A stretch of DNA of 62,976 nucleotides, the filler included, from Lenisia limosa (taxonomy: Eukaryota > Protista > Breviatea): the NCBI GenBank assembly GCA_001655205.1. It is 13 parts of 13 records of this genome, joined end to end, with 100 filler letters (N's around TTAATTAATTAA, not from the genome) between each part and the next. Parts side by side here need not be neighbours in the genome. Positions count along the whole stretch, not along the records: positions 10,158 to 29,089 come from LPNZ01009740.1; 12 more parts are not named here. One strand, given 5' to 3'. This document shows, piece by piece, positions 3,627-29,771 of this stretch. The position numbers were made by a program, and so were the translations under genes. How positions within the stretch are numbered: position 1 is the stretch's first letter; the number at the start of each line of letters is the position of its first letter. The notes under the pieces were generated by a model, which did no database searches, had not been told where the DNA came from, and saw nothing but the letters and a program-made list of their open reading frames with translations.

Positions 3627-3710
3627 GATTTTCCCACTTTTCCAGTAGTTTTCCTGGAAGGAAAATTCACTGTATATTCCCAGAAAAACTACTGGAAAAG
3701 TGGGAAAATC
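3627..3710. repeat. Inverted repeat / hairpin with 26-bp perfect arms
   Basis: gattttcccacttttccagtagtttt (3627-3652) is the exact reverse complement of aaaactactggaaaagtgggaaaatc (3685-3710); pairing extends a few bases inward with a mismatch. Confidence 0.85.
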
Positions 3711-4891
3711 CCGACTCAAGTGTTTTCCAATCGAATTCCCCCTCGTTTTTTTACTCGTGGTTGTCTTCCTTTTGTTACTCGGAGTTTTCTGTTGAGGAAA
3801 AATACAGTAATTTTCTGGGAAAAGCTTATTCAATTGTTACCGCTTCCCCCTCTCCCAGAATGTTTTCCTGGAAACAGGCGAGCAAACATCCCGTCAAAAG
3901 ATCTCAGAATTGCTGAATGAGTTTTGGAGTTCAGTGACATCGGCAACCGAATGGGCTGAACAATGCTACAGTTGTCTTGTAAGGGGGTGGGGGTGATGTT
4001 TTCACATGCAATATAAAGGTTGTATATGATATATAGTATATATTATTATTTTACTCTCTGTTTATCCGCCTCCTTTGCCCTTTTAATAGACGTGCGTTAA
4101 GTCCAAATAGTGGTTCTCATTTTTTTTTTAGTTTGGAGCCAAGCGTAACGTTGAGGACTTCTGTGATTCTATTGGCCCCATCAGAGCGATATCATGGCAT
4201 CCAGTTATCCCAAAGGTAATCACAAATTAGTCTTTACAATCTTTAGCAATGTTATGTTACAAGTTAGTTGTATTCACATCTGACTCTACAGATTTGTATT
4301 GCTACTCTTGACTCAGTGTTCATTTATGATGTTTTAGCTGCTGGTTTGTGGGATTTTATACTATTACCAGATATAGTATTCCTCATTCCTATTCAACCAT
4401 TTTTTGTTGAGGTTAACGCCAATGTTAAGCTGTGTTTTATTTTTTGACAGAACAATGATAATGCTCCCAAAATTATTCAGGCATGAACCCCATATATTAC
4501 AGCGAAATGTACACTGTTTGAGGATATTTTTCTCTTTTCTCTTTTCCCTTTTTCTTTTTTCTTTTCTCTTTTTTAATGATCATCCACTAAGGCAATGATC
4601 TCAATGGGGCTCAAGGAGTGTTGTGGTTGCAGGGGGGAAGGTAAACTGAGTTGCTATAATGATTAGAGGGGGACGGGTGAAAGAGTACTACTCACTTTGT
4701 GGGGGATGGAATTTAATTGTTATACATCAAATTGAAGGACAACGTTACTTCCGATCGGGGTAGAAGTGGAAAGTGGAGTTGATAAAGAAGTGGAGATTGA
4801 GGAAAATTGGAGGGGGNNNNNNNNNNNNNNNNNNNNNNNNNNNNNNNNNNNNNNNNNNNNNNNNNNNNNNNNNNNNNNNNNNNNNNNNNNN

Positions 4892-7800
4892 ATTGAGATA
4901 GTCCGCATAGAGCAGCAGACTGGACCGTGGAAGGTCATAGTAGGGGACTGAGTGAGGTGGTTGCCTGCGACGCCTCGGGCTATTCTGTAATCGCAAGTTA
5001 CAATAAAGTCTCTCTTGAAACTAGGATCATAAAGATCCAGCGGTTGACTACAAGCTATGTCGCCAAAACACTTTGTTTAACTCTTAAAGATGTACAAAAC
5101 ACAGTTAAGATCAACTTTTGAGGTGGCCTGAAAGATGAGTTCAGGAAAACAGAAAAACTCAACTTTTTTTTTGAGATCCTTCTGGAAGATTGAAGTTTTG
5201 TCCAAGAATGGACCGACGAACCTAGAACGTCCTCAATGAGAGCACATAATTGGCGATGGTGTTTAAAGTGAAACCCAGTAACGTGTTGAATGTCCAAAAT
5301 AAGAATCTAGTGTATAAAAAGAGGCGATCTTGGAGGCGGATATGAGGGTCTTATAGTAACGTATGAATATAATATGTAGCTAATTACAGTATATGTATTT
5401 ATGCACGTGTTATTGAGTTGAATCAATATTTCCTACTTAAGGCTGACAGAACCATCCACAACATGAAGTTNNNNNNNNNNATGCACACAGTTTTGCACCT
5501 CTATCGTATCCGTTGCATTCAGCCCATTATATTTCTCGTAATAATTCCAGTTTGCAGAGAGGGTGTATTACAACGCTATTGTTTTAAATACTAATTATAC
5601 AATATTTGAAGAAGAAATGAAGGCAGAAAATCAGCAGAGTATCGAGAAATTGCAGGATCACTCTTTGATCACTAAAATGGACCACTGTTAAATGACAGCA
5701 AGCCAGCTTTTTACCGGTAGAGCTGATTCTCTTTTAGACTGCGAATATTCATTTTTAGTGTTATTGACACAATCTGAGCCCAGAATATCTTATTTCCTAC
5801 CTTCAGTATACGGAAGAGTTTTCACTACTAGGTTACTAGACTTTTCTGAGCCTTTGTATACAGTGTATGTTGATATTAGGGTAAGCTTGGAGACGGATTC
5901 ACTGAAAAAGGGTTGTTTTTAAACTTCTTTCACGAGCTTGGTTCCCCCTTTTCCTTGACCCATACAACCTTATACAATAATTAGGGGTTTTGAGTTTGAT
6001 GACCCTTTAAAAATGTGACCAAAATCATTTTTGCAGTAAAGTCTATATTGAATCTAGGATCATAGAGACCCAGCGGTTGACTACAAAGAAACATCCACGA
6101 TCACCAGGTACCCCCAGTTTTCTAGTTAGCATTCCCGCCGCCGCCACCTAATCATGTTGTTCTCTTTTCCCTTTTTTTCTCTCTATATTTTTGCTCCATT
6201 TACTGGTAGTTTATGTGTTTGTGTAAAGGGAGCGGTAATTGGGGCTTGGCTCGCCTTCTGGTGACAGTGAAGGGCTAGATGACTGGATAATCGTCGATCC
6301 TTGAGCTAAGTCAAGCAGGTACATGAGGTAGGGTTCCCATTGGGGGTAACAGACATTTTTGAAAGGACAAGAAATGTATTTATCGAAAAAAACATTCAGA
6401 AACTTTTTGAAAAGACAAAAATAGAATATATCGAAGATGAAAAATCATAAACACATAAACTACCAGTAAATGAAGCAAGAAAAGAGAACAACATGGCTAG
6501 GTGGCGGCGACGGGAATGCTCGTTGAACTTGGCGGCCAAAACGGAAGCGGAAACAGCCTAAAACATAGACTGGTCGCGGCGGGCCAAGAGAACAACAGTG
6601 TTTACCAAGAACAGACTAACCCAGTGAAACACTCCGTAAGACATAAAGCACATTGAGAACCCGGATATCAAGTCAAGGCAGCGGTAGTTGCGGCGGCAGC
6701 GGAGAAGCTGAGAGACTTGAGACGGAGAAGCTGAGAGACTCGGGAGATTCAGGGGGGCCAGGACCCTCGGGAAGAAGGGCACAGTGGGCGTTCCAAACCG
6801 CGAGAGAGATGAGGGAGGTTCTTGAGCATCTTCTTGTCAAAAATGGGGGCAAGGGACTCAGTGTTCTGTGGGCAGATTCTGGCTGCCGACTTTAGGATCG
6901 CTCGGGGTATCACGAATAACCACCTCTCTCTCTCCCCGACCATGACCTTCTCTGGCCCGGTCTGCCCGTCTATGCGGGACTACTTGAGCTACCTCACGGA
7001 AAACAATCTCACTATTTACACTTTTATTTTCCTTCACCCTTAGCTACTGCAACTATCAGTAGCAACGGCACTTCCACCGCTCCCAGCTCCCTCCACCTCC
7101 CAATGTTCTCCCCGGGGACCTGTCTTCATCTAGGCAATGATTGGAGCTGTCGCCATACAGTTTCATGTCCGCCCGTCAAACGGCTACTGGAGTGGCTCCA
7201 CTCCATCCCGACCTTCCGTTCCTGGCAACATAGTTGACATTCGAACAGACTCTTTTTCGGATCAGAGTTATCTGTTTCTTAACCCCAAAGGNNNNNNNNN
7301 NNNNNNNNNNNNNNNNNNNNNNNNNNNNNNNNNNNNNNNNNNNNNNNNNNNNNNNNNNNNNNNNNNNNNNNNNNNNNNNNNNNNNNNNNNNNNNNNNNNN
7401 NNNNNNNNNNNNNNNNNNNNNNNNNNNNNNNTGTCTCTTCGTCCTCTGCCGCCGACAGACGTTGATTTTGTCACTTTTACCCCCGGATCCCCTACGCCGA
7501 TTACTCAACCCGAGTCTTACTCACTGTCGCCGTCATTATCACCTTCTATCTTGCCTTCTCCGCCCCCTCGCCGGAAGAGACCTAAGTCGCCAACAGCTGC
7601 CAGACCGTTAGCGTCGCGGAACAGAGGTGTACCAGGGCGACGAGAGCGAGTGTGGCCAGATTGTGGAGGCGATGATCTTGTTTATCTCAGCCGAGGGGAC
7701 CTGGTCATAGGAGAGACGAGCTAAGGAGGATGTCCTTGATCTCAGCAGCAATGGGGCCCCGGAGGTCAACAATTTTTGGGTGTTGGCACACGGACAAGAG

Positions 7801-10157: not shown

Positions 10158-10159
10158 TC

Positions 10160-13100
10160 ACCAACACCAAGAAGGACGTCGCGACCGTTCTGACCTTTGC
10201 CGTCAACGAGGACCATGGTGCCATCCACCTCGCCGCCGACCTTGAAGTGCCCTTCCCTTGTACCGGCAACCATAAGGAAGCCTTCGGCAAGATCGACCTC
10301 TCAGCCGACCTCCCGAAGCACGACAAGCCCATGCACTTCACTGGAGACTTGGACTACCACTGTCTGCTCACTGACGACACTGCGCTTGTTGCCCATCTCT
10401 CTGCTGAGGACTTCAAGCTTGCCGGTCTCGACATCCACTCCATCACTGCCACAGCTGACGTGTCGCGCAAATGGCTCGAAGGACCCGCGCCGGCCAGTGA
10501 CAGCAACCGCCTCACCGGCAACTCCAACGCCAACGGTACCAAGCACGAGGCCTTTGTCTGGGACCTCGACGTTGCGGCCGAGGCTGTCGTTGACGCCGCT
10601 CATGTTGACGTTGATCTTAAGATCCACTCCGAGCCCGATATGCCTGCCACCTTCAAGGCCATGATCCACGCCGCCGGCTCCTGGAAGTGGGGCCCTGTCA
10701 CGCTCGACGCTGACGTGACGTTCCCCTGGCCTTGCGAGGATGGAGACGAGCAGCAGGTTGACGGAAGACTGACCCTTGTTCTGCCGTCGGATCACACCGC
10801 GACGGCCGATGCCAAGGCTACGCACACGTGCGGCGCCCACTCGAAATGGCGCGTCCAAGCCGTGTTCAACACCAACATCGTCATCCACAAGAGCATCCCG
10901 AACGTGGAGAAGGTCACCGTTGACATGGTCGGAAACATGCAGGACGACGGAACCATCATTTGGACCGGTAGCCTTGCTGGCAAGACCTACTGGCCCCTTG
11001 TCGGTCTCACCGTTACCGTGACGCAGGAGTTCCGCTGGACTGCTGCCACTGGCTACACCACCGTTGCCACCTTCGTTGACGGTGACGAGGCTGGACACTG
11101 GAGCGTTGCCGGACTCGACATCGGGCTGGACGGCCACTTCCACACCTCCATCCCTTGCACCGACAACGTCGACGTCAGCGCCAAGTTCAGCGCCACCCAC
11201 AAGGACTCCCTTGACGTTCACGGTGACGTCACGGCCCACCACCCCTGCATGGTCAGTCCCGCCAAGCCTCTGACCTGGATGATTGACGCCGACCTTGCAG
11301 CCAAGTTCCACATTGGCCCCATCAACATTGACTTGAAGGACCTCAGCATTCACGCCGAGGGCATCAAGGACTTCGCCGCCGTCGACCCCGACACGCATGT
11401 TGACGACGTGCCGCTTGTCTGGAACGGCAACGCCCACGTCCAGGAGCAATGGAGCTTTGTTGCTGGCGAGATTGACGCCTCTGTTGACCTCTCTTTCACT
11501 ACCAACACCTCTGCTGCCCACCCCGTGTCAGCAATGGTCCACCTCCACGACCATCTCAGCCTCAAGCCCATCGAGCTTGATGCTTCTCTTGACCTCTATC
11601 TGCCCTGCGAAGGCGACTCCAGCATCCAGCACGGCTCTCTGGACTTCACCCTGGTCCCGCCCGCCCACGCCGCGTCCCCTCTCGAAATCGACTGTGACGG
11701 TGAGTACCATTGCCTCGACAGCGACGCTAAGGAATGGCTCGCTACTGGCAAGCTTGCCCAGCCCTGGATTGTGCACAAGCTCAAGCTCAACGAGGTTGAG
11801 TTCCACGCCACCAAATGGCGCGTACCAGACCATTGGGACGGAGACGTCCGTGCCAAGGCCAACCTCTTCGGCATCACTCTTGACGCCACTATTTCATGGG
11901 ACACCGTCAATGCCGAGTCTGACACCGAGTGGCAGATCATCCTCGACGAGCATTCCCACAACGTATGGAAGGACGTCACTCTTGACACTGCTCTGCATTT
12001 CGCCTGGCCCTGCAAGTACGGCTGGAACCAGGCCGGTTCTGCTGATCTCTTCCTTCACGTCACCACCGCCACTCACACCGACTTCCACGCCTCCAGCACT
12101 GTGGAGCACTACTGCCAGGCCAAGGCTGGCGATGCCGCGTGGCGCGTCAACGCCACTCTTGCCGAGTTCAAGCCCGTCCCGATGCTCGATGCCTTCTCCG
12201 TAGACCTCTCCATGATCGGCAAGGCTGACGACCCCGAAGCCTCCATCTCGGATAACGCCCTGCACTGGTCCGGCACCATGGTCGGGAAGGCTTGGTGGAA
12301 CGCCGTCGGCCTTGAGGCCATTGTGACCTACTCCTTCGTTGTTCCCGACGGTCCGTCGTCCACTCACGCCGCCGTAGAGCTCCACAAGGAGTTTGGCAAC
12401 CCCGCCGCCACCGCTCTTCTTGTCGACTTCCATGCCGACACCGATCTGCCATGCAAGGACCACGTCAACTTCCGCGGCCATGTCGAGGTTGAGGTCCACA
12501 ACTCGGCCCGCATTGAGCTTGAAGCCGACGGCTGGTTCAACTGCAAGGCCCATGTTGGCGATACCAAGCTCATTTCAAGCACCAAGGTCGCCGACTCGCA
12601 ACAGGTCTGGAAGATTGACGGCCACTACGCCAACACCTGGAAGTACAAGGGCCTGGCCATCAACGACCGCGTCGACATCAAGGCCAATGGCTGGAGAGAC
12701 CTTCATGCTGCAGACCACCTTGTCTGGGACGGTGTCCTCGAGGGCCACGTCAACCTTGGCGGTGAATTCGGCGTCGTCACGGCCCGGGTTCCCTTCGACA
12801 CTCGTCCCAACGCCGTTGTTCCCCCCCTCATGATCGAGTGGGATCTCAGCTACAACTGGACCATTGGTCACGCCTGGGCCCAGGTCATCTTCGAGTACCC
12901 CTGCAAGGACCGCATGACCGGTAAGGGTGGCGTCGACATTGTCCTCGACCACACTGAGCTTGCCTTCGAAGCCTCCGTCGTGGACAGTTGCGACACCACC
13001 ACTAAGTACAGCGTTCAGTTCGGCGGCAAGCTCGTCAAGCCCGCCAAGATCTACGGCGTAACCATCACGGACGCACACGCCTCGCTGCTCAAGTTCAGAG

Positions 13101-16100
13101 ACCAGGACAAGTGGTCTGGTACCGTCGGCGGCGCCGTGAAGGTTTGCTAAGATCTGCATTATGCGTTTACTGTATTATTTTAATATGCAATGTAGGATAC
13201 ATATCATATAATACTACACCATCATCATGGCATTCTCCGGCCTGGGCTATGTTTTGTTATCAATCCTCAGCCAACNNNNNNNNNNNNNNNNNNNNNNNNN
13301 NNNNNNNNNNNNNNNNNNNNNNNNNNNNNNNNNNNNNNNNNNNNNNNNNNNNNNNNNNNNNNNTTGTGACCGCATTAGGTTGGCCACATTGCTTGTAGTG
13401 GAGAGGTCAGCTTCGACGCCGACCACATCACCCAGTTCATCATCGCCTTCGCCATCAAGAGCAAGCATCTCGACATGGACGTAAGCCTTCCCTAAACCTT
13501 GCTTCCTCCAGCCTGTCTACACTTAACTAAACACTTCAGGTCCGCTTCGAGCGCAACCCCAACCAGCCTGGCCGCAACAACAAGGGCACTGCTGACGTTG
13601 AGGTCCGCAAGCTCGGTCCCATTACCGACTTCAAGGGCCACTTTGAGTTCGAGACCAACGACGTGGGGGGGGGGTATGCTGTATTAAATACAGTTTAGGG
13701 TATTGGTTGGGTATGATATTTCGGGGATATGAAAATACTATTTATAAGCGGAAGGGGTGAACCGTTTGATACCGTATCGCAATCATAAAGCCTCCTTTTA
13801 ACGTTCTTAGAAAATGGACGATTGGATTGCTCGTGCTGAGATCCAGGACCTCCGCATTGGCCTTGGCAGACACTCACTCATCAAGCTCTCAAAATCATCG
13901 GTTTGCGCCCCCCCCCCCCCNNNNNNNNNNNNNNNNNNNNNNNNNNNNNNNNNNNNNNNNNNNNNNNNNNNNNNNNNNNNNNNNNNNNNNNNNNNNNNNN
14001 NNNNNNNNNNNNNNNNNNNNNNNNNNNNNNNNNNNNNNNNNNNNNNNNNNNNNTTGAGGATTTATCGAGAAATTCGGGGGGTTTTTTGAACCAAAGTAAA
14101 GCCATAATTATCACCAAAGATGATACATTCTTCGTTTCCTTTTCATTGTCAAGGTGACCATTGAGCATCACCCTGACGGCGTGGCCCTCATCACCATTGT
14201 CGATATGGTTGCTCCCCGTCTCCCCCTCACCTTCAAAATCCTCGTCATCGACCACGGCTTCCGTGACCTCTCCATCACCCTTGAGTACCAGGGTACTAGC
14301 CTCATGGACTGTCTCGACGGCATTGCCTCGGCCGCCACGCCCGGTGCCGGATCCAAGTCCCTCGACAAGCTTCCCGGCCTTCACTCGGCCATGACCAATA
14401 GCGTCAAGAAGATCGAGCTTGAGGACATGGGTATCATCATCGACATCGGCTACGACAACAGTGAAGATGCTGAGAAGCACGACATCAACAGCCTGCACCC
14501 GACTGTTGAGGCCTATATTGACGTCAAGGTGAGAACCTGCTCCCATTGATTGCTCATGCCTTTTGCTCTTATGTTTTCCATCCTTTTACGATGATCATTC
14601 ATTTTTGCTTTTGTTGATTGATTACCATGCTTGTGCTTTCTACCCCCTGGTGATTACGTTTTCTGACGTTCAGGTCTTCGGAATGGAAGCTTCTCTCGCT
14701 CTTAAGATCGCCAAGGTGAGGGGCTGCTTTGCTTGAAATGTCACCCTGTGTTTTGCAACAAATGCTGCCTTTTATTTTCACGAAATCTTTCCAAATATCT
14801 CAAACAAAACGAAATCCCACCCCCTCCCCAGGCTGGCGGCAGCACCACAGACTGGACTCTTGCCATTGCCTTCCGTCTCCATGGAGACATCAAAAACTCG
14901 TGGGTGTGGTCTGCTCTTTATGCCATGCGCTATTAACTTGATTCAAAGTTAAGACACTCAAGCAACTCTATTGACGTACCAGGTCTCACGGCGTGATGAA
15001 GATCTTCAGCAAGGTCGGTAACAGTCTTGACTTCTACGTCGCCTTTGCCACTGAGGACACGTACCTCCACATCGGCGGGCGCGACATCGAGGTTACCCAG
15101 GTATGCACGCAATGCCTTGAAAATCGGAAATTTCAGGCTACAGAAACTGGGGTACTATGTATTCGCTTCTTTTGGGCCTGTTGTGTTTTAAGCAGCAGTA
15201 TTTGGCGAATTGCGTTTCACCGTCCAGGGCTTCACGCTTGCCGCCTCCCTGACCAAGGACAACCACAACGTTGCCGACGGCTCCGACAGATTAACTGGCA
15301 ACGGCGGTGCTGACACCAACTCAATGAAGGGTATGATTGCTGGTCGCTAAGGACTAGATTATTACTTCCTTTTTTATGCCCTTTTTATGCCCTTTTTTCT
15401 ACTGCTTGGATGGAGGTCTCACACCCACAGTCAACTTGGACCACACCAACGAGCAGACCGGCCTTATGGCGGTCGTCAACATCGCCAGCCACACCGAGCT
15501 CAACATCTACTGCGAGCTCATCATGAAGGCCACGGACGCCAAGCACCCCGGCCTCAAGTTCATGTCAATGAGGTTCCTCCTCAACATCCACGAGACTTCC
15601 GTCGGAATTGGTAGGCTCGGTTTCTGTATCATAATTCCATTTGTCGAGGACTGATTTCGGACCAAATTGCAATACTTGTCACACATTTGCGTCTGTTGCC
15701 CTCACACCCCAGGACTTGCTACCGACATGATGGCGACCTTCAAGGGCGGCCCACAAGGCATCCAGTCCTTCAAGCTCATCATGGCTGTCATGTTTGACCT
15801 CTCTCCCCGCGGCATCATCTTGGACATGGGTGCTGAGCTCACCAAACTCCGTACGCTGCAGTGATTGAAATCTCCATTGCCTCTTCACATCTGTCATTAT
15901 GAGTCCGAAATCTTGATTTTCTCGGCATTTTCTTACTCCGCAGCTGGAGGATCAGAGTTCCTTGAGAACCCCCTTGGAATCTCCAAGCACATTGCCCTTC
16001 GCGTTCCTCTCCTCTTCGAGATCGGCCTGAACCTCGCTGGTATGTTTTGACCCTCATCATTTTCACTTAGGATGACTTTTTCTTCCTTCTTCCACCCAAT

Positions 16101-19100
16101 GGTAAAACAAACAGATTTTTTTTTAGCTCCTTATCCAGCATTTCTTCTCTGACCTTTCAGCTGAGGGATTCCCGGTCCGGTTCGGCTTCATTGCCGACTT
16201 TGTCATCTATGATGGTCACAGCGAAGACCTTCCCCTACCCACTGGTGAGCTTCAGGCCGGCTATGTTGTTCGCTGCGCACTGTATATAATATGCCGCTGG
16301 CTGACTCTCTTTGCCCTTTATTGCGTATCCATTTTGACCACAACCCTCTAACCCCCAGGCCCCCACACGCCCACCCTGGACGACATGGTTGATGGAACAA
16401 TGGAGGCCGGCGCGGCCGTATTTGCCGACTTCATCGATGACGTGTACGCTCTCGAGGCCTGGGTCCTCAAGTTCAACCTCAACGGTCTCATGCAGGCCTT
16501 CGGCTTCGACAAGTACTTCGGCAAGCTCGGCAAGGTCCTCTTCGACTGCAAACTTGACCTGCTCCACATCCGCATCAATCTTAGCACCACCACCGTCCGC
16601 ATCCGCAACCTTGACAACAGCGGAATTGCCCACGAGATCGCCCCCGGTCTTCTCTTCGACATGCGCGGCCTGGACCTTTGGGAGGTCATTCGCGCCGACC
16701 AGCTGACAATTGAAATGGTTCCCAACAAGGGCGTCACGGGCATTGCTGTCATGTACCCCTTCCACATTGGCAACGTGTTCTCCATCGGAGACTACCGCGG
16801 CGGCAAATGCTCACACGATCACGGCCCGGTCCTTGACATTGCCCTCACCACCAAGAGCCAGCACCTCATTGCCGAGGGCTGCACCAAGTTCCTCGGAGCC
16901 GAGCTTGACGCCTGGCTCCAGGTCGGCGTATCAGGCCTCAAGGCCAACTTCACCCTGGACCTGTGGCACAAGTTCAAGCTCGAGGCCGGTGTCACTATCG
17001 TCACCAAGCCTCCGTCAGCCGAAATCTACGCCGGATTCAAGGGCGACATTGTGCAGATGATCATCGACGCCATCAAGGATGCAATCAAGGCTATGGCCCA
17101 GGTCCTTCATAAGGAGTTCGAGACCCTCAAGGCAGCCGCTGATAAGGCCCGCCGCTTCCTTGCTGAGAAGCAGCATGCCATGGACATGGCTCGCAAGAAG
17201 TTCGACGACGGTGTCGGCAAAGTCATTCGTCGCGTCGAGAGTGCTCGGTCAAAGGTCGATCATTTGTCACACAAGTGTAGCTCTATCCACACTAGCGTAA
17301 GAGGGTTCTGGCTTAGCTATCTCATAAAAGGAGCTATAACGCCGTGTTCAACACACTCTGATATGTACCCACTCCCTGTTATCTGATAATACTAAAATAA
17401 TTTGTTTTCGTTGTATTCTTAAATAAAGTAGTAAAATTGTTTTTGCCATTACTTTTGTTGTTACTATATGTTGTTGGTATTTCTAACGCGGCACAGTGGC
17501 GCCATCCCGGTCGCTACATCAAGAAGGCTGCATGCAAGGTTGCCCTCTTCGCTGCCAAGGTCGCCCTCAAGGCTGTCGAGATTGTCCTCAAGGGTGTCAA
17601 GGGTGCCGGAGATGCTCTCCTGCGCACCGCGTCCGCCGCCCTGGGTGCGGCATCCTCCGCCTTCAAGCTGGCCGGCCAGGTCCTCAACGGCATCGAGAAG
17701 GTTGTCGACGCTCTGCCCGGACTCATTACATCCGTCTTGGAGTTCCTCAAGAACATCATCAGTATCGACGAGTTTTACATCAAGGACAAGCTCTCGGCCA
17801 ACGCCAACAAACTCTCGGCCCACATTGCTGGTAAGCTTTTCGGAAAGCACTTCAGCAAGACCTTCGGCTTCACGCTTGACTTCAAGAACTTCGTCAAGAG
17901 CATTGTCAACTGGGTTGTTGATGAGTTCAAACACATCGCCCACGGCCATCTCCGTCGTGACGATCTCATGATCGGCGACCATCTTGACATTGGAGGCTTC
18001 ATCATCCCCCGTGACGACCTTCCAACCGGTGCCCTCGACACCGAGCTTCTTTGTGATGAGATCTCCCGCTGTGTCTACCCCAAGGCCCAGATCATTGATG
18101 CCGGAAGCAACTTTGACGGCAACGACGTCTCCAACACCCCTGCCAAGCGCCTGGAGGGCCATTTGTGCCCCACTATCTTCACCGTGGCCAACGAGCACTT
18201 CTTCCTCGACAACAACAGCTTCAACGGATCGCTTCCGGTCGAAGTCGGCGAGGGCGCTCTTGGCGACATCATCAAGACGCTACACTTCGGAGGCAACAGC
18301 TTCCAAGGCGACATTCCTGTTGTCTGGGCCAAGAACCTGCCGAACGTTGAGTGGCTTGACATCTCGGGCAATGATATTGACGGCTCCCTCGAGCCCCTCA
18401 AGAACATGACCAACCTTGAGTACCTCAACGTTGCCTTCACCAACCTCAACCACAGTGAGACCATCCATGTTGCTGAGACCCTTGCTGAGCTGACCAAGCT
18501 CCGCGTCCTTGACCTTCGCGGCACGCCCATGCACACCGCCGACAACCTCCTTGTCGACTCACCTGCCGAAACCGCGTCGCTCCAGGCTGGTATCGCCATT
18601 GACCGCCACCTTGAGTTCTTCAGCGGCGCTTGTGACAACAGCGACCGTGTTGAAGGCTTCCTTGGCGCGCCGTGCTCCAACCAGCCTGCTGTTGAGGCCC
18701 TCGAAATGGGCCTCCGAGCCTTCGCCCTCAACTACATTGCCGGTGACATGGACGAGGCCGACAACGTCAACGCCACCGTCTTGCGCATGGCCGGCTACGA
18801 CAATGGAATCACCCTGGTGACAATGCGTGTTGACGCCCCCGCCGCCGCCCGCATCAACTTTGATCATCTTGCCGAAGACGTCCGTGCCATGCCCGGCCTG
18901 GTCGTTGCTAAGGTCCCCGAGTACCACGAAGATGACGATGATGACGAGGCGATTCTCAACCCCCCACTCACTGTTTTCGGCGAAACCACTCTGACCATGC
19001 CGGTGCACGACACCAACGTCCAGACTGCCACAGTGCTGGAGACCCTTAGTATTGTCCGGGCCGAGGCCGTCGGAGTTGTCTCACCCGGCCGCATGGGTGT

Positions 19101-22100
19101 CCGTGGTGAAGTCTTCTGCCCCCACGGATGGAGACGCTACGAGGTATCCGTTCCTCCCGCACACCAGGAGTTCGACTACGATCGCAACTATACCGACGCT
19201 GAGCTTGACGCCTATAACCCCACGGGCTACTCCATCGGGCCTCTTGACGACGCTGCCATGGCCCAGACCGTGCCAATGTGCTACATCTCTGTCGACTGCC
19301 GTGAGGAGTGCTACGATGCTGTCCACGAGGCCTCCACCGTCTGCACTGCCTGGCTCTACGACACCGCGTCCGCCCTGGACTGCGACCTGGCTATCCAGAA
19401 CACTCATGCCATCTGCCCGGCCGCCGGCACCGCCAACTGCACCCTTCCCAGTCTCGAGCCCTTCATGCGTCATCTTGAGAACAGCGTTGCCGCAATCAAG
19501 CCACGCATCAACAGCGGCTCGACTCGCGTCGCCATCGCCCGTGCCGACAACGTTGTGGGTCTCTACGACACTTCGACTGATCTTCATGATCTGTCGTCTC
19601 CCCCCGCCCACGTGACCAGTCGCGAGTGGCTCTGTATGCGCGGCGACGCCGATTGTGGCGCTCTCTTTGAGATCACTGTTNNNNNNNNNNNNNNNNNNNN
19701 NNNNNNNNNNNNNNNNNNNNNNNNNNNNNNNNNNNNNNNNNNGCCAAACACGCCGATAATGGCGTCTACGCCATCACGATGACCACCCATGTCGGCTCGC
19801 GCTCCGCCACCGCCGTCATGAACCTCGAGGTTGTCGGCGACTATGCTGTGGCCCTGGAGTGGACCAACAGAGGCCCGGCCCGTTTTGTCTCCGAGGGCGA
19901 AGGTATCGACCTTTCCGTCGACGGTCCTGCCGCCGTGAAGTGGACCAACCCCTCAGCTTCCGGCTTCAGCTGTGGCAGACTCAACCTTGACAGCGCCGAC
20001 GTCACGTCCACGTTCACCCTGGGCAGCGACCTCCTCCAGCTCTCCGTCCGGCCCGCCGCCCTCAAGCCGGGATGCTCCTACGTCTTCCGCGCCACTGCGC
20101 TTGACGCCCGTGGACTGGCCACCGCTCGCTTTGTCGAGACCGAAATCACGGTTGTTTCCAAGCCCATTGTCGGCACCGTCAAGGCCGACCCCGTCCGCAG
20201 CCCGGCCCGGCTTGGCGTCGCCGTGTCCGTACGTCTCACAGCTGAGGACTGGACCTGCACTGAGGCCGCACAGTGGACCGTCGGCTCGCCTCTGATGTAC
20301 AAGTTCGCTGTCCGCCATCCCGACGGCTCCGTGACGGCCATTTCCGCCGCCACCGCCCACAATGAGCTTGTCGTGGCCCTCCCCGCCACTCGTGTTGCCA
20401 CCACTTTCGTTGTCTCCGCAATCGACCGGGCCGGAAATGAGGTATCCAAGACCTTCACCCTCCGCCACCCTCTTGCCACTGCCGCCGCCGGCTCCTCAAA
20501 CCCTGCCGACTTCATTGCCTCGGCCATCAGCAACAACCGCGTCCTGACCTCTCCACGTGACTGGGAGCTTCCTGCCGCGCTTAGCGACGCTGCTATGGCC
20601 GTTGCCCTTCTGCAGAAGGAAGATTTCGTCAACTGCAACGCCATGATTGACTCCATTAATACCCTTGTTGAACGCACTATCACCCTCACCGGCCGCCTCC
20701 ACTCCCGCACCGCACCCCACGCCGGGTCTGCCATCGCCTCTATCGTTCAACGTGCTGCCCTCTGCTCGGAAGCCCCGCAGAGCCTCAGCGCCCTAGTCTA
20801 CGCTGCTGGGGCGGACAACTCCTACTCTCCATCCACGCTCAGCCACGCTGCTCAACTTGGCGCTGACGTGCTTGCGATGGCGGACGCTGTGGCCAACCTT
20901 GACACCACTCACGACGCGCGCGTAGCCCTTCCCACTGTTCTGCGCACGGTTGCAACACGCCATCTTGCCGCCACTGCCGCTGAGTCGCCTCTCAACCAGC
21001 TCAAGTCCTCCGTGACTGCCAGCAACGGTCAGGCATCGTACCAGGTTGCGCGTGGCTCCAAGGCCGCCTTCACCGATAAGTTTGAGGGGCTTGCGTTGAT
21101 AGCGTTGTAATCCTTTGTGAACATGATGGGGATGGCTTCGACCTTTGTTTTATTTTCTATCTTTGTCTTGGCTCTTTAATCTTTGTTCCCTAACCCCCCA
21201 GCACCGTGATCACCCTGGCCACCCACCCCGCCCTGTCCTCCTCCGAATGCATCNNNNNNNNNNNNNNNNNNNNNNNNNNNNNNNNNNNNNNNNNNNNNNN
21301 NNNNNNNNNNNNNNNNNNNNNNNNNNNNNNNNNNNNNNNNNNNNNNNNNNNNNNNNNNNNNNNNNNNNNNNNNNNACTCACAGCAACGTGACGTCGAAGT
21401 TCGTTACTGCACACGACACCTTCTGCCTCGGAGCGGTCAACTCCGAGCCCATCAAGGTGGAGACTGTCGATGACATCGTGGTCGCTGAAGTGACTTTTGC
21501 CGACGCGGACGACTGCATGTTCTGGGATATTGATATTGGTCACTGGAGCAGTGAAGGCCTCGTGTCAGCCGACGCTACTGAGAACAACGGCGTGACCTGC
21601 AGGTGGAGCCATTTGACNNNNNNNNNNNNNNNNNNNNNNNNNNNNNNNNNNNNNNNNNNNNNNNNNNNNNNNNNNNNNNNNNNNNNNNNNNNNNNNNNNN
21701 NNNNNNNNNNNNNNNNNNNNNNNNNNNNNNAAGCCATAATAAAGCTCTTTAATAACCCTTTGGCATAAAAAGGAGTAATGGCGGAAACTGTACTTTTTGT
21801 TGATATTCTTTTCTCCATTTCTAGACCGATCATTGCTGACCATCCTCAGAGCCCCCGCACTAACACATCATCGCTGTGGAGCATCATTGCCCTTGTTGCC
21901 GCCACCCTTCTCGGACTTGGCGTTGTTGGTGCCTCCGTGTTCTTCGCATTCAGAGTATGCCCGATCAAAGATCATTCTTTTGTAGTCTCTGAACATATTA
22001 GTTCTTTATCCAAGATTAGACTTTTACTTCTTGAACTTGAGCCGTGATTGTTTTCCCTCGTTACTGACCGTCTAGTTCAAGGGACCGGTTGCGTCGGAAG

Positions 22101-22230
22101 CTGATTCCCGTCAGGCTTACACCGAAATCACCGACGAAGTAAGCTTTGGACCTTTTCGTTGTGCCACGTTCTTGTCAGTTCACCTCTCACCCGACAGTCG
22201 CCCACCATGAGCCTTAACCAAGACTACTAA
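10160..22230 (+). CDS. Giant single-pass surface protein: tandem beta-rich repeats, helical hairpin, LRR, REJ, GAIN/GPS, one TM, short tail (5' truncated)
   Basis: About 21 visible exons (roughly 9.5 kb coding, >3,100 aa) with uniform C-ending codon bias; most junctions join in phase by GT-AG introns and a few fall in N gaps. The frame is open from the contig edge. LRRs at ~18190-18535 (LHFGGNSFQGDIP; WLDISGNDIDGSL). REJ-like region ~19490-20470 (REWLC...C; LSVRPAALKPGCSYVFRAT; LTAEDW...PLMYKF). GPS at 21514-21617 (CMFWD...WSSEGL...TCRWSHLT). TM LWSIIALVAATLLGLGVVGASVFFAF. Tail RFKGPVASEADSRQAYTEITDESPTMSLNQDY*. Confidence 0.85.
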
Positions 22231-22516
22231 TTGGACCGCCTTGGAGGTTGTTCCTTAATATATAGTATTTGCACAATGTATATCTCTCACTATTAGAACC
22301 AAATTAGAACAAGTTTTGTGACATGTGCGCAATATTATTATATACGATATGAGGAAAACTGGTCAGTGGTTTTTGAACTGAAAAAAAACAAAATAAATTC
22401 GTCTGGTGCCCCATACTCAGGTTTTGTGAAGAATGTATTTTTTGGTGGCGCAGGAGGATCAGGATTGAAGAGAAATATATTATATTTATTTATTTATTAA
22501 AAAAGAAGAGAGTAAT

Positions 22517-24617
22517 ATGGCACAGAACAGTGAAGCAAAGCGGCCAAGTTCCTCAGAAATCGCTCCTGGCAAGCGAACCAAGACCGTTGACCCAAGTTTA
22601 ATCGTTAAAAAGAAGGGTGCTAAGAAGAATGACCCTGTTCCTGTTCTGAAAACCGTGGTTCAGGAAGAAAAGCCGGAGGAGGAAGACTTCGAAATTGAGG
22701 TAGGCTCTGTACTAACCCCTCCCCCTTGACTTTCAATAGAATGATGTTGTCCCTGTTGATTTCCGTGTTCGGGATCTGGCAGAAGGAGATTACCATGTGA
22801 TCAAGAACCTTGTCATCAACCTTGCTGACGGCATTGAGTTTGACTCTGCCGAGCTTACTTCAAAGGTGTGTGGTTCGTAGATTATAAGAACTGTAATAAT
22901 TGGTGGTTTTTGACTTTTTCGGACAAAGGAAATCGCTCCAATAAGTATGGATAATTGACCGATTTGCTCAATGATTTCCCAAGGAAAATCGGTCAAGACT
23001 TATCCCGGTCAGTTTATATATATATCAACTACCACATGCTTTTGGGCTAATTTAATGTTATATATTGGTTTTAAATTGACACGGACAGGTTGTGGAACAA
23101 ATTGATGTTGGTGCGGCTCTGTCCGTTGGCGGGGACAATAGTGTGGAGGGAGAAGACACCTTCGGCTTCATCTCGGTTATGAGTCTCAAGGAGCACAAGG
23201 ATCTCGCGTCGATCCAGTTTTTGGTCCGCCATATCGCCGCGCGTACCAAACATTGCCCAAAGTTCTCCAAAGCCCTTCACAATGCTCTCCAAAAGGACAC
23301 TGGTGAGCGTGAAAAAGCAACAGTAGTGATTACAATAAAGCAGGCTCTCAAATACGAGGAAAATTTTCATAAATTGAACATGAAACACCATACTTTGTTC
23401 ACCCAAAATAGGTTTCCTTAAAAAAAAAAAACCTCACTTCATAGGTCTAGTTTTGAATGAGCGTGCTGTGAACACCCCATATCAAGTAAGCTGCATGGGC
23501 TAATTGAACACCCCATATCAAGTAAGCTGCATGGGCTAATTGCTCCCCAAATCCTTTAATTAACATGTTTAGGTTTCTTTGGTTTGTTGTTTTTCTGTTT
23601 CTTATGCACCCCTTTCTAATGTTGCTTATTTAAATTTATCACACAATAAATAGTTTTGTGATCTGTGTAGGTTGGTGCCATGCTTCAAGTTGCTCTGAGA
23701 GATGATATAAAGTGGATGCATGATAACGAGGTTTGCAAGAAGTGTGATATGTTGTCAGTATAGTATACATCTCCTCACATCTTAGCCCAATGACCCATGG
23801 CACTTCACCCACTACCTCGTGATTTCCAAGGGATTCACTGTGTCGGTATGTGGATTGTCTCCTCCTCCATCAAAATATAACCATTTAAAGAAGACTTCCG
23901 TTGATACTTTACATTCATCCCCACCCTGGTGCATATTGTGCAACACTTTGTTACCAGAGAGAGTATTTCAATATCATCTTATTATATTAGTGTACTCCCC
24001 CCTCCCCTTAACAGCAATATTCTTCATCGAACTTTCCTTGGTTTTNNNNNNNNNNNNNNNNNNNNNNNNNNNNNNNNNNNNNNNNNNNNNNNNNNNNNNN
24101 NNNNNNNNNNNNNNNNNNNNNNNNNNNNNCTTGGAAGTTTCGAGTTTTACAAGGGTGAAGACAAGGCTCTTTTAAGTGTACGCTGAAAATTACCCATGTC
24201 TTTATCACCCGTCTCTATCTCTTTATCACCCACCTTTATCACGTCTTGGTTCTCATGTTTGAAGGCGGCGTCAGCTTGGACCACTTACCCCGTTCCCAAT
24301 TCGGCACACTCTGTCCTTGTTGAGCCCGAAAATGGGGTAGGAAGAGAGGCTTGTCGAATTCTGAGGATGTCAATATACTATATAAATACTAGTGAACAGA
24401 AGCATGAAAAAGTTATTTTGTTTTATTTATTCAAATCCAAGAGAACAACAAGCTGTATCAAGTTCTTTGAGAGCTGACCTCCTAGGAGAAGCCTTCAAAA
24501 GACTCAAAAGACAATGAGGTGATTGTCTCCGAACACCGAATTGTTGCGTTGGTGAGTGCCAAGGCCTGGACTGACTCCCTGAAACAAATTTCTGAGGAGT
24601 GTCAATATGGTATTTAA
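22517..24617 (+). CDS. BCP1: BCP1/BCCIP family protein (multi-exon)
   Basis: Spliced exons give VPVDFRVRDLAEGDYHVIKNL...FDSAELTSKVVEQIDVGA, EDTFGFISVMSL, GLVLNERAVNTPYQVGAML, FYKGEDKALL and HRIVALVSAKAWTDSLKQI; these are the conserved blocks of BCCIP/Bcp1, in the expected order. Confidence 0.88.
23469..23540 (+). repeat. Exact 36-bp tandem duplication spanning an exon/intron junction of BCP1
   Basis: tgaacaccccatatcaagtaagctgcatgggctaat occurs twice (23469-23504, 23505-23540); each copy contains CAA|gtaagc. Confidence 0.95.
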
Positions 24618-24771
24618 TGTTTATTTTGTTATTATTTTTCTAATGGATTGATCCCCCCCCCCCCTCATTTTTTGATCACATTTCTTCGGAGAAAACATCT
24701 TGAAATGGACTATATCAGAAAACAAACGAATTAACATGCTAAAACCTAGACAAAAAGAACAAAATTGATAT

Positions 24772-27190
24772 CTAGCCCTCCTCCTCATCGTCTAAAACAT
24801 GCCGTCGGAGTGAGCGGTCGAAAGACGATGAATCCAACGCAACACTCTGCTCAATTACACCACTTAGGTTCAAAAGATCAAAAACAACCAGTTGTCTTCA
24901 GGTGTCCAATGACATAAAACAGTTCACCCCCCTCCCGAAATAAGACCTAATAAAGCAAACCGGGAAGGTAGGCGAGAGGTATGATGATGACGATGATTGA
25001 TGTAGTCGATTTTCTGGCAGGACTGCAGTTTCAACTACATTGTGTGAGTTTAGTTAGTGCTTATCATACGAATTTCAACAAAGTGGGCAACACTTTGCTG
25101 ACAAAAAGAGAACAGAAACAATCTAGGCTCCCAACGGCATCAGAGGCCTGTACAACTGTCTATTGGTCAATTCAACTCACTTGAGGTCATGCCAGCAAGA
25201 GGAAAGCGGGTAAGCGGGTCAGGGTCCTCCAAGCCAGATTCCGACATAGCTTCTGACATCGAGTCAACGGAATTGGCCACCACAGACTCGATGGTCAAGA
25301 CTTCAGCCTGAGAAAACGACGCGGGGTGGCGATCTTTTGGGAACCGACGGTGCTCGGAAGAGTCTGACGTCATGGACATTCGGCTATGTGTAGAGTGAGG
25401 GGAGTAGAGCGGGTGGCCATCGGTGATGTCAACAGGGGGGTTAGTGGAGGACGGTGAGAGTGGCGGAGACGGCGATGGTGGGGTAAACGTTTGAATCTCT
25501 AAACTCGAAATCATCTGAAACATAAGAGAAGTGCTGAAGATAACCAAGACACGAGCCGGGCTACCCTCATACATCAACAGGATCGAGCTCCTCCTGCTGG
25601 CTGGCTTCGGGGTTGCGAAGACAAGGCTTGAGGCCGCTGGCAGCGCTGTCTAGGCTGGAATGGCTCCATGCTCGTGCCACAGACCTGACGGGATCTTCCT
25701 CGCCACTACTGAAGTGAGCTGACTGCGTTCAAAGGCAGCGTGTGTGTGGGGGAGGGGGGGGATACGTTAACTGATTAAAAAGTTGTAACACGCCAAAATG
25801 TCATTTAAAAAATAAATTCACCCAATTTTTGCCTTATAGTATGGACACTCAAAAAGGAAATTCAATTTGAAACAATTGACCCAAAAGAGCCCAAAGTATT
25901 TAAAGGGATTCCCTTCGCACCAAAAGATTAAATTCCCCTATATTATTTTTTACTCATTATGACACGAGGGAAGCCCAACCAAACGCCGTACCTGCTTGCA
26001 GCGCTCAATGCCCCTGAGGACCGGCGAGGACGGGGAGAGGACAGGCCGCTGTATAATGATGCTGTTTCAGACATCGGCTCATCTTCAGAGATTGGGGAAC
26101 TCGTGTTTTCAGGCTATAAGGGTTAGAACACAAAAGGTCATTATTTCTTACGAAAATTTAAACCCAATTCAATAAGAACAAAGAGAACACATACAGGCAA
26201 TAAAGCAGCCAACCTTTAGAGTGAATGGGTTTGGCTGTTCAGAAGACGCGAAGGAAACGGGAAGTTGGAACTGTAACGGGGGGGTGGCAGTGAACGTGGT
26301 GACATTGGTGGCGAGTGACGGTTGAGGCATGGCTTCTTGCTGGGGTTGGAATGAAACGCTGGCCTCGCCTGAGTTGTGAGCAGGGAATCCCTTAAAAACT
26401 CCTTGTTTTGCAATGATGTGTGTGATACATTAACTCGTGTTCCGACAAAATAAACTGTCAAACCATGAGTAAGTTTGGGTGAAACACCAATCCAGAAGAA
26501 AAATAAATCAGAGATCTTAAGTAAATTCACAACACTCACCAAAAGATGGGAAGGAAGACGCAGAAACAGAATGTTGAGGAACATGTGTGGTCCAGGAATC
26601 AACGATTTCTTTTCTGTCATTTTGGACTGGTCCGGGCTCGAACATGAAATTCACATTACTTCGCTCATCAGACTGAATAGTAAGAAAAGTTACCAAAATT
26701 CCAAAAAAAAACAATCATAATGCCTTATTTATTTAAACTCATTGAAACCTCCATCTAGGCATACAGCTGGTAGAACAAATCGGGTTCTTGTGACGGACAC
26801 TCTTCTCCTAGTTCGCCTTGAATTTTCTGAAAGTATCAATTTGGCACTTGAAGAAGCAACCATTTGAAAACACTGGTTTTATTGATAACATTTACCCACA
26901 CCACCCCTTAATATGCACAAATATTCAGAAACCCACCAGGTAGGTGTTCGGAAGCTTGCTGTGCTCTTGTTTGGGCTGATGTTCGAGTAGCATTGAGCAC
27001 TGTGTTGATCTTCGTTTGTGCATCAATGAAATGATCTAAGATTCAATTAAAATACCCCTTAATGTGTGGGTAAAAATTAAAGGGAGGATCAACACAAGAT
27101 TCCAAGTAAAAACAGAAGAGAAACCCCTCCTTCACCTGCAGGTGAATCATCCTCAAAGCGCAGTCGCTTTTTGTTATTTCGCTGTGACAT
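24772..27190 (-). CDS. Hypothetical Ser/Pro-rich, probably disordered protein (multi-exon)
   Basis: ATG at 27190 (MSQRNNKKRLRFEDDSPA). Further AG/GT-bounded exons include DHFIDAQTKINTVLNATR, KIQGELGEECPSQEPDLFYQL, SPISEDEPMSETASLYSGLSSPR and TFTPPSPSPPLSPSS; possible last exon SFDRSLRRHVLDDEEEG*. No domain recognised and the 3' exons are uncertain. Confidence 0.5.
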
Positions 27191-27559
27191 TCGCGTTGTC
27201 AATGTCAATATAACAACTCAATTACATGATAGTTGGTTATGGGGGGCAATCTAGGACTGAGTTAGGTGGCGAACCCGATGAATGTAAGGTATTTTACCGC
27301 TTAAAAATACAATAACTTATAAAGTTCAGTACAATTTGAGATCCAAAGAGGTGTTTTGTCCAAAGTCCAAAAAAAACAAACCATTTCACCGCCGCCGTAC
27401 TTGAATTTGCTAGAACTACAATTTAAAAGAAGGCCTCTTTTGTCACAGATTAAAGGAATTGACTAATTTCTAGCATTATAACGGACTCTTTTCACTAGGT
27501 GGTGTTTGTGCTCCTAGGGATTTGATAATTATTGCGTTTCTAAACTCTCTGTTTCGATC

Positions 27560-28800
27560 ATGAGTCACCACTACGACGGCATGTACATGGGACAAGGAGG
27601 AAATCATCCAAACCAAGCTGCCCCGCAGTCTCACTCTTTTGCTCAAGGAGGCAATCCCTCATACCCTCACCATCAGCAGCATTCAAATGCTCCTCCCCAA
27701 ATTCATGGTAAGTGTTTTGATAAGATTTCAAGTAAACGTATCCCCAGTTATCTTCTGATGTTATAGGTAACTATCCTGGCCTACAGCCAGAACACATTTT
27801 TATCAAACCAAGAAGAAAGAATCTCACACAGGTAAGGGGAGAGATATTGCATCTTAATAGCGATTTCACCCTATTTGCACTCCACGAATATCTGAAGAAT
27901 GCTGACAATCAAGGGTCTCAATGTCGGAATGATCCGTGCCGACTCCCCCCCTCTTGAGGTTTGTCCACAGTAAACAATACTATCTGTTTCCTCTGAGAAC
28001 CGCATGAGTAAGAAATCCAATGATGTTTTCCTCTCGCACTCTTTATAAAATTCCTCTGAAATGGTTTAATTTTATTATGATAATTCTTTACTGCGCTTTC
28101 TGCACGTAAAAATGCCCAATGTTGGTATTCTTGTAAAGAATTAGAATCACTCACGAATAAGTACAAACAAGTTACACCCTAGGATATGTATACCCGCTTC
28201 CCGACCCCTGAGAGGCGCCTGGCACCAAGACAGTACTTTGATGAAGAGGCTGACGCAAGGCTTTATTCCCCTCCTCCCCCATCCCCACCGTCTCCTCCCG
28301 CTTCCCCTAAGAACTATCAGTACACTCCAAATGTGAGAGGGCGAAAGTAATACCCATCCACCGTGAACATTCTTTTTGTGTGGGGTTTTCATGCAAAACC
28401 AGTCAATTCATAATGTAAGGAAAGAGGAGGGAGAAACTGTTTTGTTTTTGTTTTTTTTGGTGGGGGTTTTAGTTTACATTTTTATCACTCTTTTCATTTT
28501 CAGACAATAATTAGAAACTTTTCAAATCCAAGATAAGCTTCTCCCCTAAATAAATTTAATTGAATAGCCCCAGCGTGCGAGCATGGAAAGTGAAAGGACA
28601 AGACCGCTCATGGCCTACGATTTCCTCAAGATGAACCCCTCAATGATGTCGTCGCTAGTGTCTCAAATGATGACCGGCCTCGGATTGGCAACCCAGCCGA
28701 ACGCCGTTTTTGGCATGCGTCTCATCGTCCAGCCAAATGGCAACGAGAAACTCTGTTTCGGAACTGGAATTAATGGTGAGGAGGTTTTATGTTCAACAAA
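27560..28800 (+). CDS. Hypothetical protein with Q/H/P-rich N-terminus (multi-exon)
   Basis: MSHHYDGMYMGQGGNHPNQAAPQSH...PPQIH|GNYPGLQPEHIFIKPRRKNLTQ joined by a canonical intron; later exons are plausible but their frames are ambiguous. Confidence 0.45.
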
Positions 28801-29771
28801 ATAGACTTGGTATATTACACCATGGGGTCTGGAGGGAAGGTATATGATATATAATTATTAAAAAAAATCTGTATTTTATTAAAATGGGGGTGATTTCAGA
28901 GAGGAAAAAATCCAAACAAAAAGCCTGTCATTTGCTGAAAATAGTAAAGTCTGAGCTATATCCGTGTTGTTCTTGAGAGGAACTTAGAGGCAAAGGATTA
29001 ACTGTTTTTTTTTGAGAAAAAACAATTGAAATATTATAAACTTAATGGGAAATGTTGATGTTGTGTTTTTCAAAAGTAGTATTTATTATNNNNNNNNNNN
29101 NNNNNNNNNNNNNNNNNNNNNNNNNNNNNNNNNTTAATTAATTAANNNNNNNNNNNNNNNNNNNNNNNNNNNNNNNNNNNNNNNNNNNNGCTGAGCGACG
29201 ACGAGCAGCGCGTCAAGAGCAAAACCATCCAAAAACCCGGGCCAGGCGAGGCCTGTTAGTGTGTTGTTTCCGTCATTTGTCTTATCATGTAATCCTCTGT
29301 ATCTGCCTTTCTGTCTTCATGTCATGGGTTTCTTGAAAAGGGTTAACATGATTTCTTTCCTAGTCCAAAAAAACAAAAACCCAAATGTACTTAAGATGAA
29401 GTGTTGAACATATTGGGAGTGCCCCCTCCTTGGCGTGATCAGAAGATGGGGACAACGTGACAACTGGTAAACAACTGGAGGCTGAAGCCTCTGGCTGATG
29501 TAATAACTGAATAACTAAATCATGCATTTCAGCTCTAGTTGAGGGAAGAGGTACCCCCAGGTATCAGCAATTATATATGAATTTCCCTCTCCCAGAGCAG
29601 TTGCCATTCATTGACAACAGACAACACGAGACAAAAGGTGCTTTTGCACAGATCAGACAACTATTTCAAATCCGAAGTAAAGCTGACAAAACTAAGAGAC
29701 GAAAGGCGACATTGCTGGCTACCAAGACACGTCTAGACTTCTTTACTGGTTCTACCGCGAGATAAGACACG

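Follow-up and report, generated by a model that had tools for sequence, protein, structure and literature searches.

The locus considered here raises the question of whether a single gene of Lenisia limosa (Eukaryota; Protista; Breviatea) encodes a very large surface protein carried on a GAIN/GPS stalk and one transmembrane (TM) helix, and what such a stalk would do with no receptor or channel part behind it. The window, i.e., the whole stretch of DNA that was analysed, is 62,976 nucleotides (nt) long, filler included, and was joined from 13 parts of the assembly GCA_001655205.1. The locus lies in the piece at positions 10158-29089 (LPNZ01009740.1), and unless another contig is named, positions count along the window. 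An earlier reading (the sequence-only reading) had described here one spliced frame for a membrane-tethered, self-cleaving surface protein with a large unrecognised ectodomain. Our analysis showed that one expressed multi-exon gene encodes a giant type-I surface protein.

One expressed gene for a giant surface protein

The coding stretches of the piece are GC-rich (~60%) and lie on the + strand, with AT-richer introns of 60-240 nt between them. Long open frames were found at 10160-13147, 16352-17383, 17401-19779, 19671-21107 and 21127-21765, and a dynamic program using codon usage and GT..AG splice sites chained ~3,150 codons in one frame by way of a dozen small exons at 13379-16244. The giant gene, as modelled, runs on the + strand from the piece edge at 10160 to a stop codon at 22208-22210. 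Since its frame is still open at the piece edge, the N-terminus is missing; the 5'-truncated model encodes more than 3,180 residues, to which the full-length protein probably adds several hundred.

All exons lie on the + strand. The first (10160..13141), cut at its 5' side by the piece edge, encodes seven all-beta repeats and is supported by its open frame, the repeat alignment and a leave-one-out profile test. The middle beta-rich part of the N-terminal module is encoded by ~12 small exons (13379..16244), which are predicted from the model only: 13379-13480, 13540-13662, 13811-13906, 14154-14528, 14674-14715 and 14832-14899, followed by 14983-15100, 15228-15330, 15431-15610, 15713-15850, 15956-16039 and 16161-16244. 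The module's C-terminal beta-rich part lies in the exon 16359..17296, which from 17048 also encodes the charged first helix of a helical hairpin. A long exon (17497..21079) then encodes the second, Ala/Gly-rich hairpin helix (up to 17763), the end of the module (~17952), leucine-rich repeats (LRRs), a Cys-rich region, an Ig/REJ-like region and the position of GAIN subdomain A. It is followed by an exon for GAIN subdomain B and the GPS (21202..21617), an exon for the single TM helix (21850..21954, helix at 21874-21951) and a tail exon (22076..22210), the last read from RNA as far as 22126 and from translation.

We corrected the assembly gaps by placing contigs from two runs of the same organism, one DNA-like (X1) and one of poly(A) RNA (X2), on 17400-23399. 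The gap at 19681-19742, written as 62 N, is truly 18 nt long and joins both frames exactly; because it is in frame, 17497-21079 is one exon. The gap at 21254-21375 (122 N) is truly 27 nt in both DNA and RNA, and that at 21618-21730 (113 N) is 44 nt in DNA, where the RNA contains 19 exonic nt and then splices to 21850. These 19 nt complete the GPS as ...SHL/TEFAAVK. Two further gaps (13276-13363 and 13921-14053) lie inside predicted introns, and the frame is preserved without them. As a side observation, all three tested gaps are much shorter than their N runs, and some gaps adjoin homopolymer runs (G10, C12; flanks including 13663-13674 and 13909-13920), which are the likely cause of the breaks.

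The 3' part of the gene was read directly from RNA. RNA contig 8 (depth 393, zero mismatches) covers 20381-21079, 21202-21617, 21850-21954 and 22076-22126, and verifies three GT..AG introns on the + strand (21080-21201, from the gap to 21849, and 21955-22075). It reads ...C-R-W-S-H-L-T-E-F-A-A-V-K-S-P-R..., then a hydrophobic helix and then R-F-K-G-P.... Because this contig passes from the GPS through the TM helix to the tail, no hidden TM exon exists in the gap at 21618-21730, a point that the sequence-only reading had itself set down for checking. On the 3' side, the giant gene is bounded by the start of a BCCIP-like gene (22517..23304, + strand), ~300 nt downstream of the giant-gene stop. 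This neighbour has its own RNA contig (start 22437, depth 63), an in-frame stop followed by an ATG at 22517, introns of its own and a match to Pfam BCCIP (4.7e-7); its introns, its ATG after the stop and the BCCIP match make it a separate gene.

For the 5' two-thirds of the frame, the main evidence for one gene is provided by collinear relatives with single open reading frames (ORFs). Positions 904-1162 of a Euglenozoan family profile (A2, built from the stand-alone relatives described below) align collinearly to the small-exon part (13379-16244), and positions 1270-1695 align over the exon 16359..17296 and the exon following it. The whole profile against the X-bridged model of the giant protein is collinear (E 4e-59) and crosses both the small exons and the 17296|17497 junction. 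The exon 14154-14528 also has a tblastn match to 9110-9382 of L001, a metagenomic contig with an orthologue. The single spliced frame claimed earlier is thus upheld by RNA over 20381-22126, by tested gaps that are in frame and by collinear single-ORF homologues.

Several candidate features were rejected. An intron proposed by the dynamic program at 19678-19829 was false, as the reads show the in-frame 18-nt gap there, and the GPS that the program had trimmed was corrected from the reads. Its 3' extension into the BCCIP-like gene depended on an acceptor at 22806 that is not used by the RNA. A signal-peptide-like frame at 17401-17496 was a translated polypyrimidine intron without ATG.

The N-terminal module and its relatives

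In the N-terminal module (~1,950 residues), seven or more beta-meander repeats are followed by another beta-rich stretch and by an antiparallel helical hairpin of ~170 residues. Seven divergent repeats make up the first 994 residues, with a period of 135-158 aa (~147 aa, where ~145 aa had been claimed), and each has an invariant P-C, followed ~30 residues on by another Cys, and a W-x-G motif. When each repeat was scored with a profile of the other six, 17-67 bits were obtained, against a maximum of 20 bits in 200 shuffles of each. AlphaFold2 modelled repeats 5-6 as an all-beta meander (pLDDT 63). The hairpin, proposed earlier at ~150 aa, spans ~172 residues. Charged residues make up 36% of its first helix; in its second, Ala/Gly/Ser account for 36% and hydrophobic residues for 38%. 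The hairpin is interrupted at its Cys-containing tip by the intron 17297-17496. The repeats are clearly predicted to contain disulfides, and the hairpin tip to be stapled by cysteines.

No Pfam family matched the module in pieces of the giant protein or in its homologues, even at an E-value of 10, and the same pieces and homologues gave no match to the Pfam families AsmA, TamB, YhdP, YdbH and Chorein_N up to that value. No toxin-family sequence match was found for the module. Word-index protein searches with a 996-aa piece, the family alignment and the L001 ORF returned nothing useful, and ESM Atlas feature searches returned just unnamed or weak clusters. Relatives were instead recovered with a profile of the seven repeats (A1), which was searched against 1.84 billion representative proteins and matched 22 of them. 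An unnamed module family was recognised, with P0001, P0003-P0005, P0007, P0009, P0012, P0013 and P0020 as members.

One of them, P0001 (1,081 aa), is 30% identical to the whole repeat region and collinear with it. It sits on L001, a 20-kb contig of 41% GC, on which every part of the giant protein recurs in the same order. The hairpin, LRR and Cys-rich regions are 37% identical (E 1e-143) and the REJ-like region 25% identical, and everything from the hairpin through the GAIN-A position, with the LRR, Cys-rich and REJ-like regions included, forms one ORF of 1,493 aa. The GPS piece of L001 reads T-C-I-W-S-H-L-T-E-F, so that S-H-L-T-E-F is kept in both orthologues at ~36% overall identity. After the GPS, an intron, 28 residues, one intron-split TM helix, a basic stretch and a tail of ~45 aa were read by eye. 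Upstream of the aligned part, L001 contains further open frames with repeat-like W-x-G motifs (3439-5231), of which the frame 4824-5231 matches the repeat profile.

Another relative is P0004, a single ORF of 3,043 aa from a transcript of the amoebozoan Clastostelium recurvatum (EukProt). Its match to the family profile has an E-value of 1e-114, and in its alignment to the hairpin/LRR/Cys-rich exon many cysteines are invariant. Towards its C-terminus, a Ser/Thr-rich mucin-like stretch leads to one TM helix with a tail of 28 aa, and no GPS was found in it. Seven other relatives stand alone: they are ~1,700 aa long, carry signal peptides and extend barely past the hairpin. One of these, P0005, is from the diplonemid Rhynchopus euleeides, and the others (P0003, P0007, P0009, P0012, P0013 and P0020) are from unannotated ENA assemblies. 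The long-read ENA assembly ERZ25333236 (L002, L003) holds at least two diverged clusters of stand-alone genes, P0009 and P0020/P0029; as each of these is represented by several almost identical copies spread over different large contigs, the family is multi-copy there. A scan of JGI metagenomes with profile A6 detected no relative. The ectodomain called unrecognised by the sequence-only reading therefore does lack a Pfam model, yet it belongs to a family conserved in other eukaryotes.

The fold of the module was predicted with AlphaFold2 for the C-terminal 844 residues of P0009, using a 12-row alignment that included the giant-gene exons (pLDDT 76, pTM 0.49). The model shows ~45 antiparallel strands of 10-14 residues, a hairpin of two ~80-residue helices, three strands and a final helix. 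Foldseek/Atlas matches included ApoB100 (E 3e-6), AsmA-like proteins, TamB, YdbH, YhdP, LptD and vitellogenin, as well as unnamed proteins, some of them fused to ricin or fucolectin domains. A wide VIA-align search returned just generic coiled-coil hairpins (Z <=12, the noise level for long helices). The module is thus modelled as an extended antiparallel beta meander with a weak resemblance to the lipid-cradling sheets of AsmA/TamB-like proteins and ApoB. Among the roles suggested previously (adhesin, lipid handler or membrane-attack effector), only this weak likeness to lipid-cradling beta sheets was found.

The GPS anchor and its possible function

Between the module and the membrane, the plant-type LRRs (18133-18531) match Pfam LRR_4 (8e-8), and in the PDB they match the ectodomains of plant LRR receptor-like kinases (GSO1, FLS2, MIK2, PEPR1 and TDR, 5e-24 to 1e-16). 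These matches span exon residues ~213-345 and are of the plant-specific 24-residue LRR type. The Cys-rich region (19081-19476) is conserved in the alignments with L001 and P0004. It is followed by an Ig/REJ-like beta region (19935-20567) with a sub-threshold Pfam REJ match and, from ~20496, by a region that takes the place of GAIN subdomain A and is presumably helical; sequence and profile searches of the PDB found nothing for the REJ/GAIN-A region. The GPS (PF01825, motif start 21511) scored 25.7 bits on the gap-truncated piece, above the gathering cut-off of 22.5, and 29.4 bits on the complete piece of the L001 orthologue. The LRRs, the Cys-rich part and the GPS named by the sequence-only reading were all recovered in this way; of its REJ-GPS stalk, the GPS part stood and the REJ part gave the sub-threshold match only.

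The GAIN fold consists of a helical subdomain A and a beta-sandwich subdomain B (~320 aa in total), and a canonical GPS contains four cysteines, forming two disulfides, and two tryptophans. Both tryptophans are present here, as are the H-L-T triad and the hydrophobic strand after it (T-E-F-A-A-V-K in the RNA, S-H-L-T-E-F-N-I in L001). H-L-T-E-F sits 17 residues before the TM helix, which is the one strong TM-like segment of the X-bridged model (hydropathy 2.39). No 7TM domain, channel part, PLAT/LH2 domain or 11-TM region was found after the GPS; the single TM helix claimed earlier is confirmed by the RNA contig and by hydropathy, with the next gene starting at 22517. The cytoplasmic tail has 21 RNA-supported residues if the possible GTAAGC donor at 22139 is used, and 44 at most if it continues to the stop at 22208-22210. 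Motifs of the type Y-x-x-hydrophobic occur in the tails of both orthologues, Y-T-E-I here (22076-22138) and Y-T-Y-V in L001 (16100-16200), and are possible endocytic sorting signals.

Taken as a whole, these features are best explained by a giant GPS-tethered type-I protein with a cleavable tether and with the module as its working unit, which we consider probable on balance. From the outside inward, the protein consists of the module, the LRR and Cys-rich part, the Ig/REJ-like and GAIN-type region with the GPS, the TM helix and the tail. Within the secretory pathway, the GAIN region would cut its own chain between Leu and Thr, so that an ectodomain of ~3,100 residues would be held non-covalently, through the T-E-F-A-A-V strand, to a stub made of that strand, the TM helix and the tail. 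Self-cleavage is plausible because H-L-T-E-F is intact, conserved and placed 17 residues before the membrane. As the protein has no 7TM or 11TM part, the logic of a tethered agonist has no receptor to act on; with neither receptor nor channel to activate, the GPS may hold the ectodomain on display by a tether that can break and so permit shedding. Since the module is free, mucin-anchored or GPS-anchored according to lineage, it appears to be the conserved working part and its anchor to be interchangeable. This interchangeability is the strongest support for the display or release device proposed by the sequence-only reading: a tethering role fits the comparisons, whereas release depends on cleavage, for which the intact HL/T speaks.

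A surface, a membrane or a lipid is the probable ligand of the module, and the LRR/Cys-rich part would add recognition. The long beta sheets of the module look amphipathic, and its weak fold likeness suggests lipid- or membrane-binding sheets; an adhesion or coat role is equally possible. A bolder proposal is that the module is an undescribed pan-eukaryotic extracellular machine that binds or perturbs lipids or membranes, here placed on a breakable GAIN/GPS tether and releasable on demand. We regard this as quite improbable; if it were true, GAIN autoproteolysis would be used with no receptor attached.

Several observations weigh against the explanation that we prefer. The small exons at 13379-16244 are without RNA support, the 5' end and the signal peptide are missing, and RNA contig 8 ends at 22126, short of the stop codon. 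The REJ match (PF02010) has 22.5 bits (E 5e-5), below the cut-off of 25, and covers profile positions 243-444 only; Pfam REJ gave no match in the L001 orthologue. The GPS has two of the four canonical cysteines: the second Cys is replaced by Leu, and C-x-C is C-x-W before H-L-T, in both orthologues. Many GAIN domains with H-L-T/S fail to cleave, and the loss of the two cysteines together with the absence of a modelled GAIN fold holds self-cleavage of this protein, as predicted, down to about an even chance. The structural matches of the module had a Foldseek probability of 1.0 and TM-scores of 0.1-0.47, and at such scores might be what any long beta meander would give.

One alternative, with the same architecture, is that the GAIN/GPS region stays uncleaved, as the rigid juxtamembrane stalk of an adhesin or receptor-like coat protein whose anchoring is permanent. 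The two GPS cysteines missing in both orthologues speak for it. The mucin-like stalk of the Clastostelium protein does the same job, so a passive spacer is sufficient. However, H-L-T-E-F is conserved while neighbouring regions are only ~25-37% identical, which suggests selection on the cleavage site and its strand, and we hold an uncleaved stalk to be possible, though clearly less probable than a cleavable tether. A further proposal concerns the cargo: the module could be a membrane-attacking or pore-forming effector whose Ala/Gly-rich helix and Cys/aromatic tip insert after shedding or engagement. It would fit the composition of the hairpin, with its Ala/Gly/Ser-rich, hydrophobic second helix paired with a charged first one, the conserved Cys and Trp at the tip in homologues, the structural neighbours with fused ricin or fucolectin lectins (an arrangement often seen in targeting toxins) and the TcdA4 channel helices among the VIA matches (Z 10.8). 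Yet the VIA values are inside the noise range stated for long helices, toxin families gave no sequence match, and the hairpin was modelled at pLDDT 55-75 only, so such an effector is very unlikely in our judgement. Finally, the frame might merge two or more genes, or continue into more TM exons as in polycystin-1. The unsupported small exons leave room for this, as does an RNA contig that ends just before the possible donor at 22139. Against it, single-ORF homologues are collinear over every junction, the X2 contigs contain no RNA at 22200-22399, the BCCIP-like transcript is independent with its own ATG at 22517, and the L001 orthologue has the same ending; a merged or continued frame is extremely improbable.

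Neighbouring features and comparison with known systems

Downstream of the giant gene, the RNA of the BCCIP-like gene has a very short intron of 40 nt (22698-22737) and one of 223 nt (22864-23086), with the next exon near 23447. The second intron contains a short palindrome (22955-23010) with the arms T-T-G-A-C-C-G-A-T-T-T ... A-A-A-T-C-G-G-T-C-A-A. Its DNA word depth is ~9,000, against ~34 in the flanks, and many contigs branch at the site; it looks like a high-copy MITE-like repeat. A further gene is suggested on the minus strand, where a stretch of higher GC and positive GC skew (25170-26650) contains open frames of 160 and 144 aa; neither frame has a Pfam match.

It has been reported that SpREJ1, SpREJ8 and SpREJ9, sea-urchin proteins of the PKD1/REJ family, combine REJ, GPS and one TM helix (PMC1934368), that GAIN domains occur in Dictyostelium and Tetrahymena (PMC3321182), that the GAIN-7TM linkage is a holozoan innovation and GAIN domains are older than it (PMC12716839), and that Ectocarpus has a REJ/GPS protein with 6-7 predicted TM helices (PMC4700764). 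Because the sea-urchin proteins have the layout and GAIN domains predate the 7TM link, a stalk with a single TM helix is not new, and the sequence-only reading was overstated in this respect. Like SpREJ1, SpREJ8 and SpREJ9, the giant protein has a large modular ectodomain, a GPS just before its sole TM helix, no channel and a short cytoplasmic end. In the animal proteins the ectodomain includes an unambiguous REJ along with lectin, EGF and PKD repeats, whereas the protist protein has a sub-threshold REJ, the unnamed module and plant-type LRRs. With polycystin-1 and the adhesion GPCRs (PMC3321182, PMC12716839), it shares the GPS H-L/T and hydrophobic strand (T-x-F-A-...) ~17 residues before the TM helix; it differs from them in having no 7TM, 11TM or PLAT and only two of the four GPS cysteines. 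It is a clear non-animal GAIN/GPS stalk without a 7TM or channel partner, and bears on the role of GAIN before its linkage to receptors.

The predicted fold resembles its top Foldseek and Atlas matches (AsmA-like proteins, TamB, YdbH, YhdP, LptD, ApoB100 and vitellogenin) in its putative long runs of 10-14-residue antiparallel strands and extended sheets. The bacterial proteins among them (AsmA-like, TamB, YdbH, YhdP and LptD) are, unlike the module, periplasmic bridges or barrels, and there is no sequence-family match between the two. What appears new to the libraries searched is therefore the module as cargo and its combination with plant-type LRRs, and a large conserved extracellular module without a Pfam model is defined for at least Amoebozoa, Euglenozoa and Lenisia limosa. 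In the Clastostelium protein P0004, homologous repeats lead into the beta-rich region, the hairpin, the LRRs and finally the Cys-rich part, as in the giant protein, and identity over ~700 aa is 22-25%, but the stalk of P0004 is Ser/Thr-rich and without a REJ-like or GPS region. The stand-alone proteins of ~1,700 aa share the repeats, the beta-rich region and the hairpin, but have no LRR, stalk or TM helix. These three forms of deployment, i.e., free, mucin-anchored and GPS-anchored, constitute a natural experiment on the function of the module.

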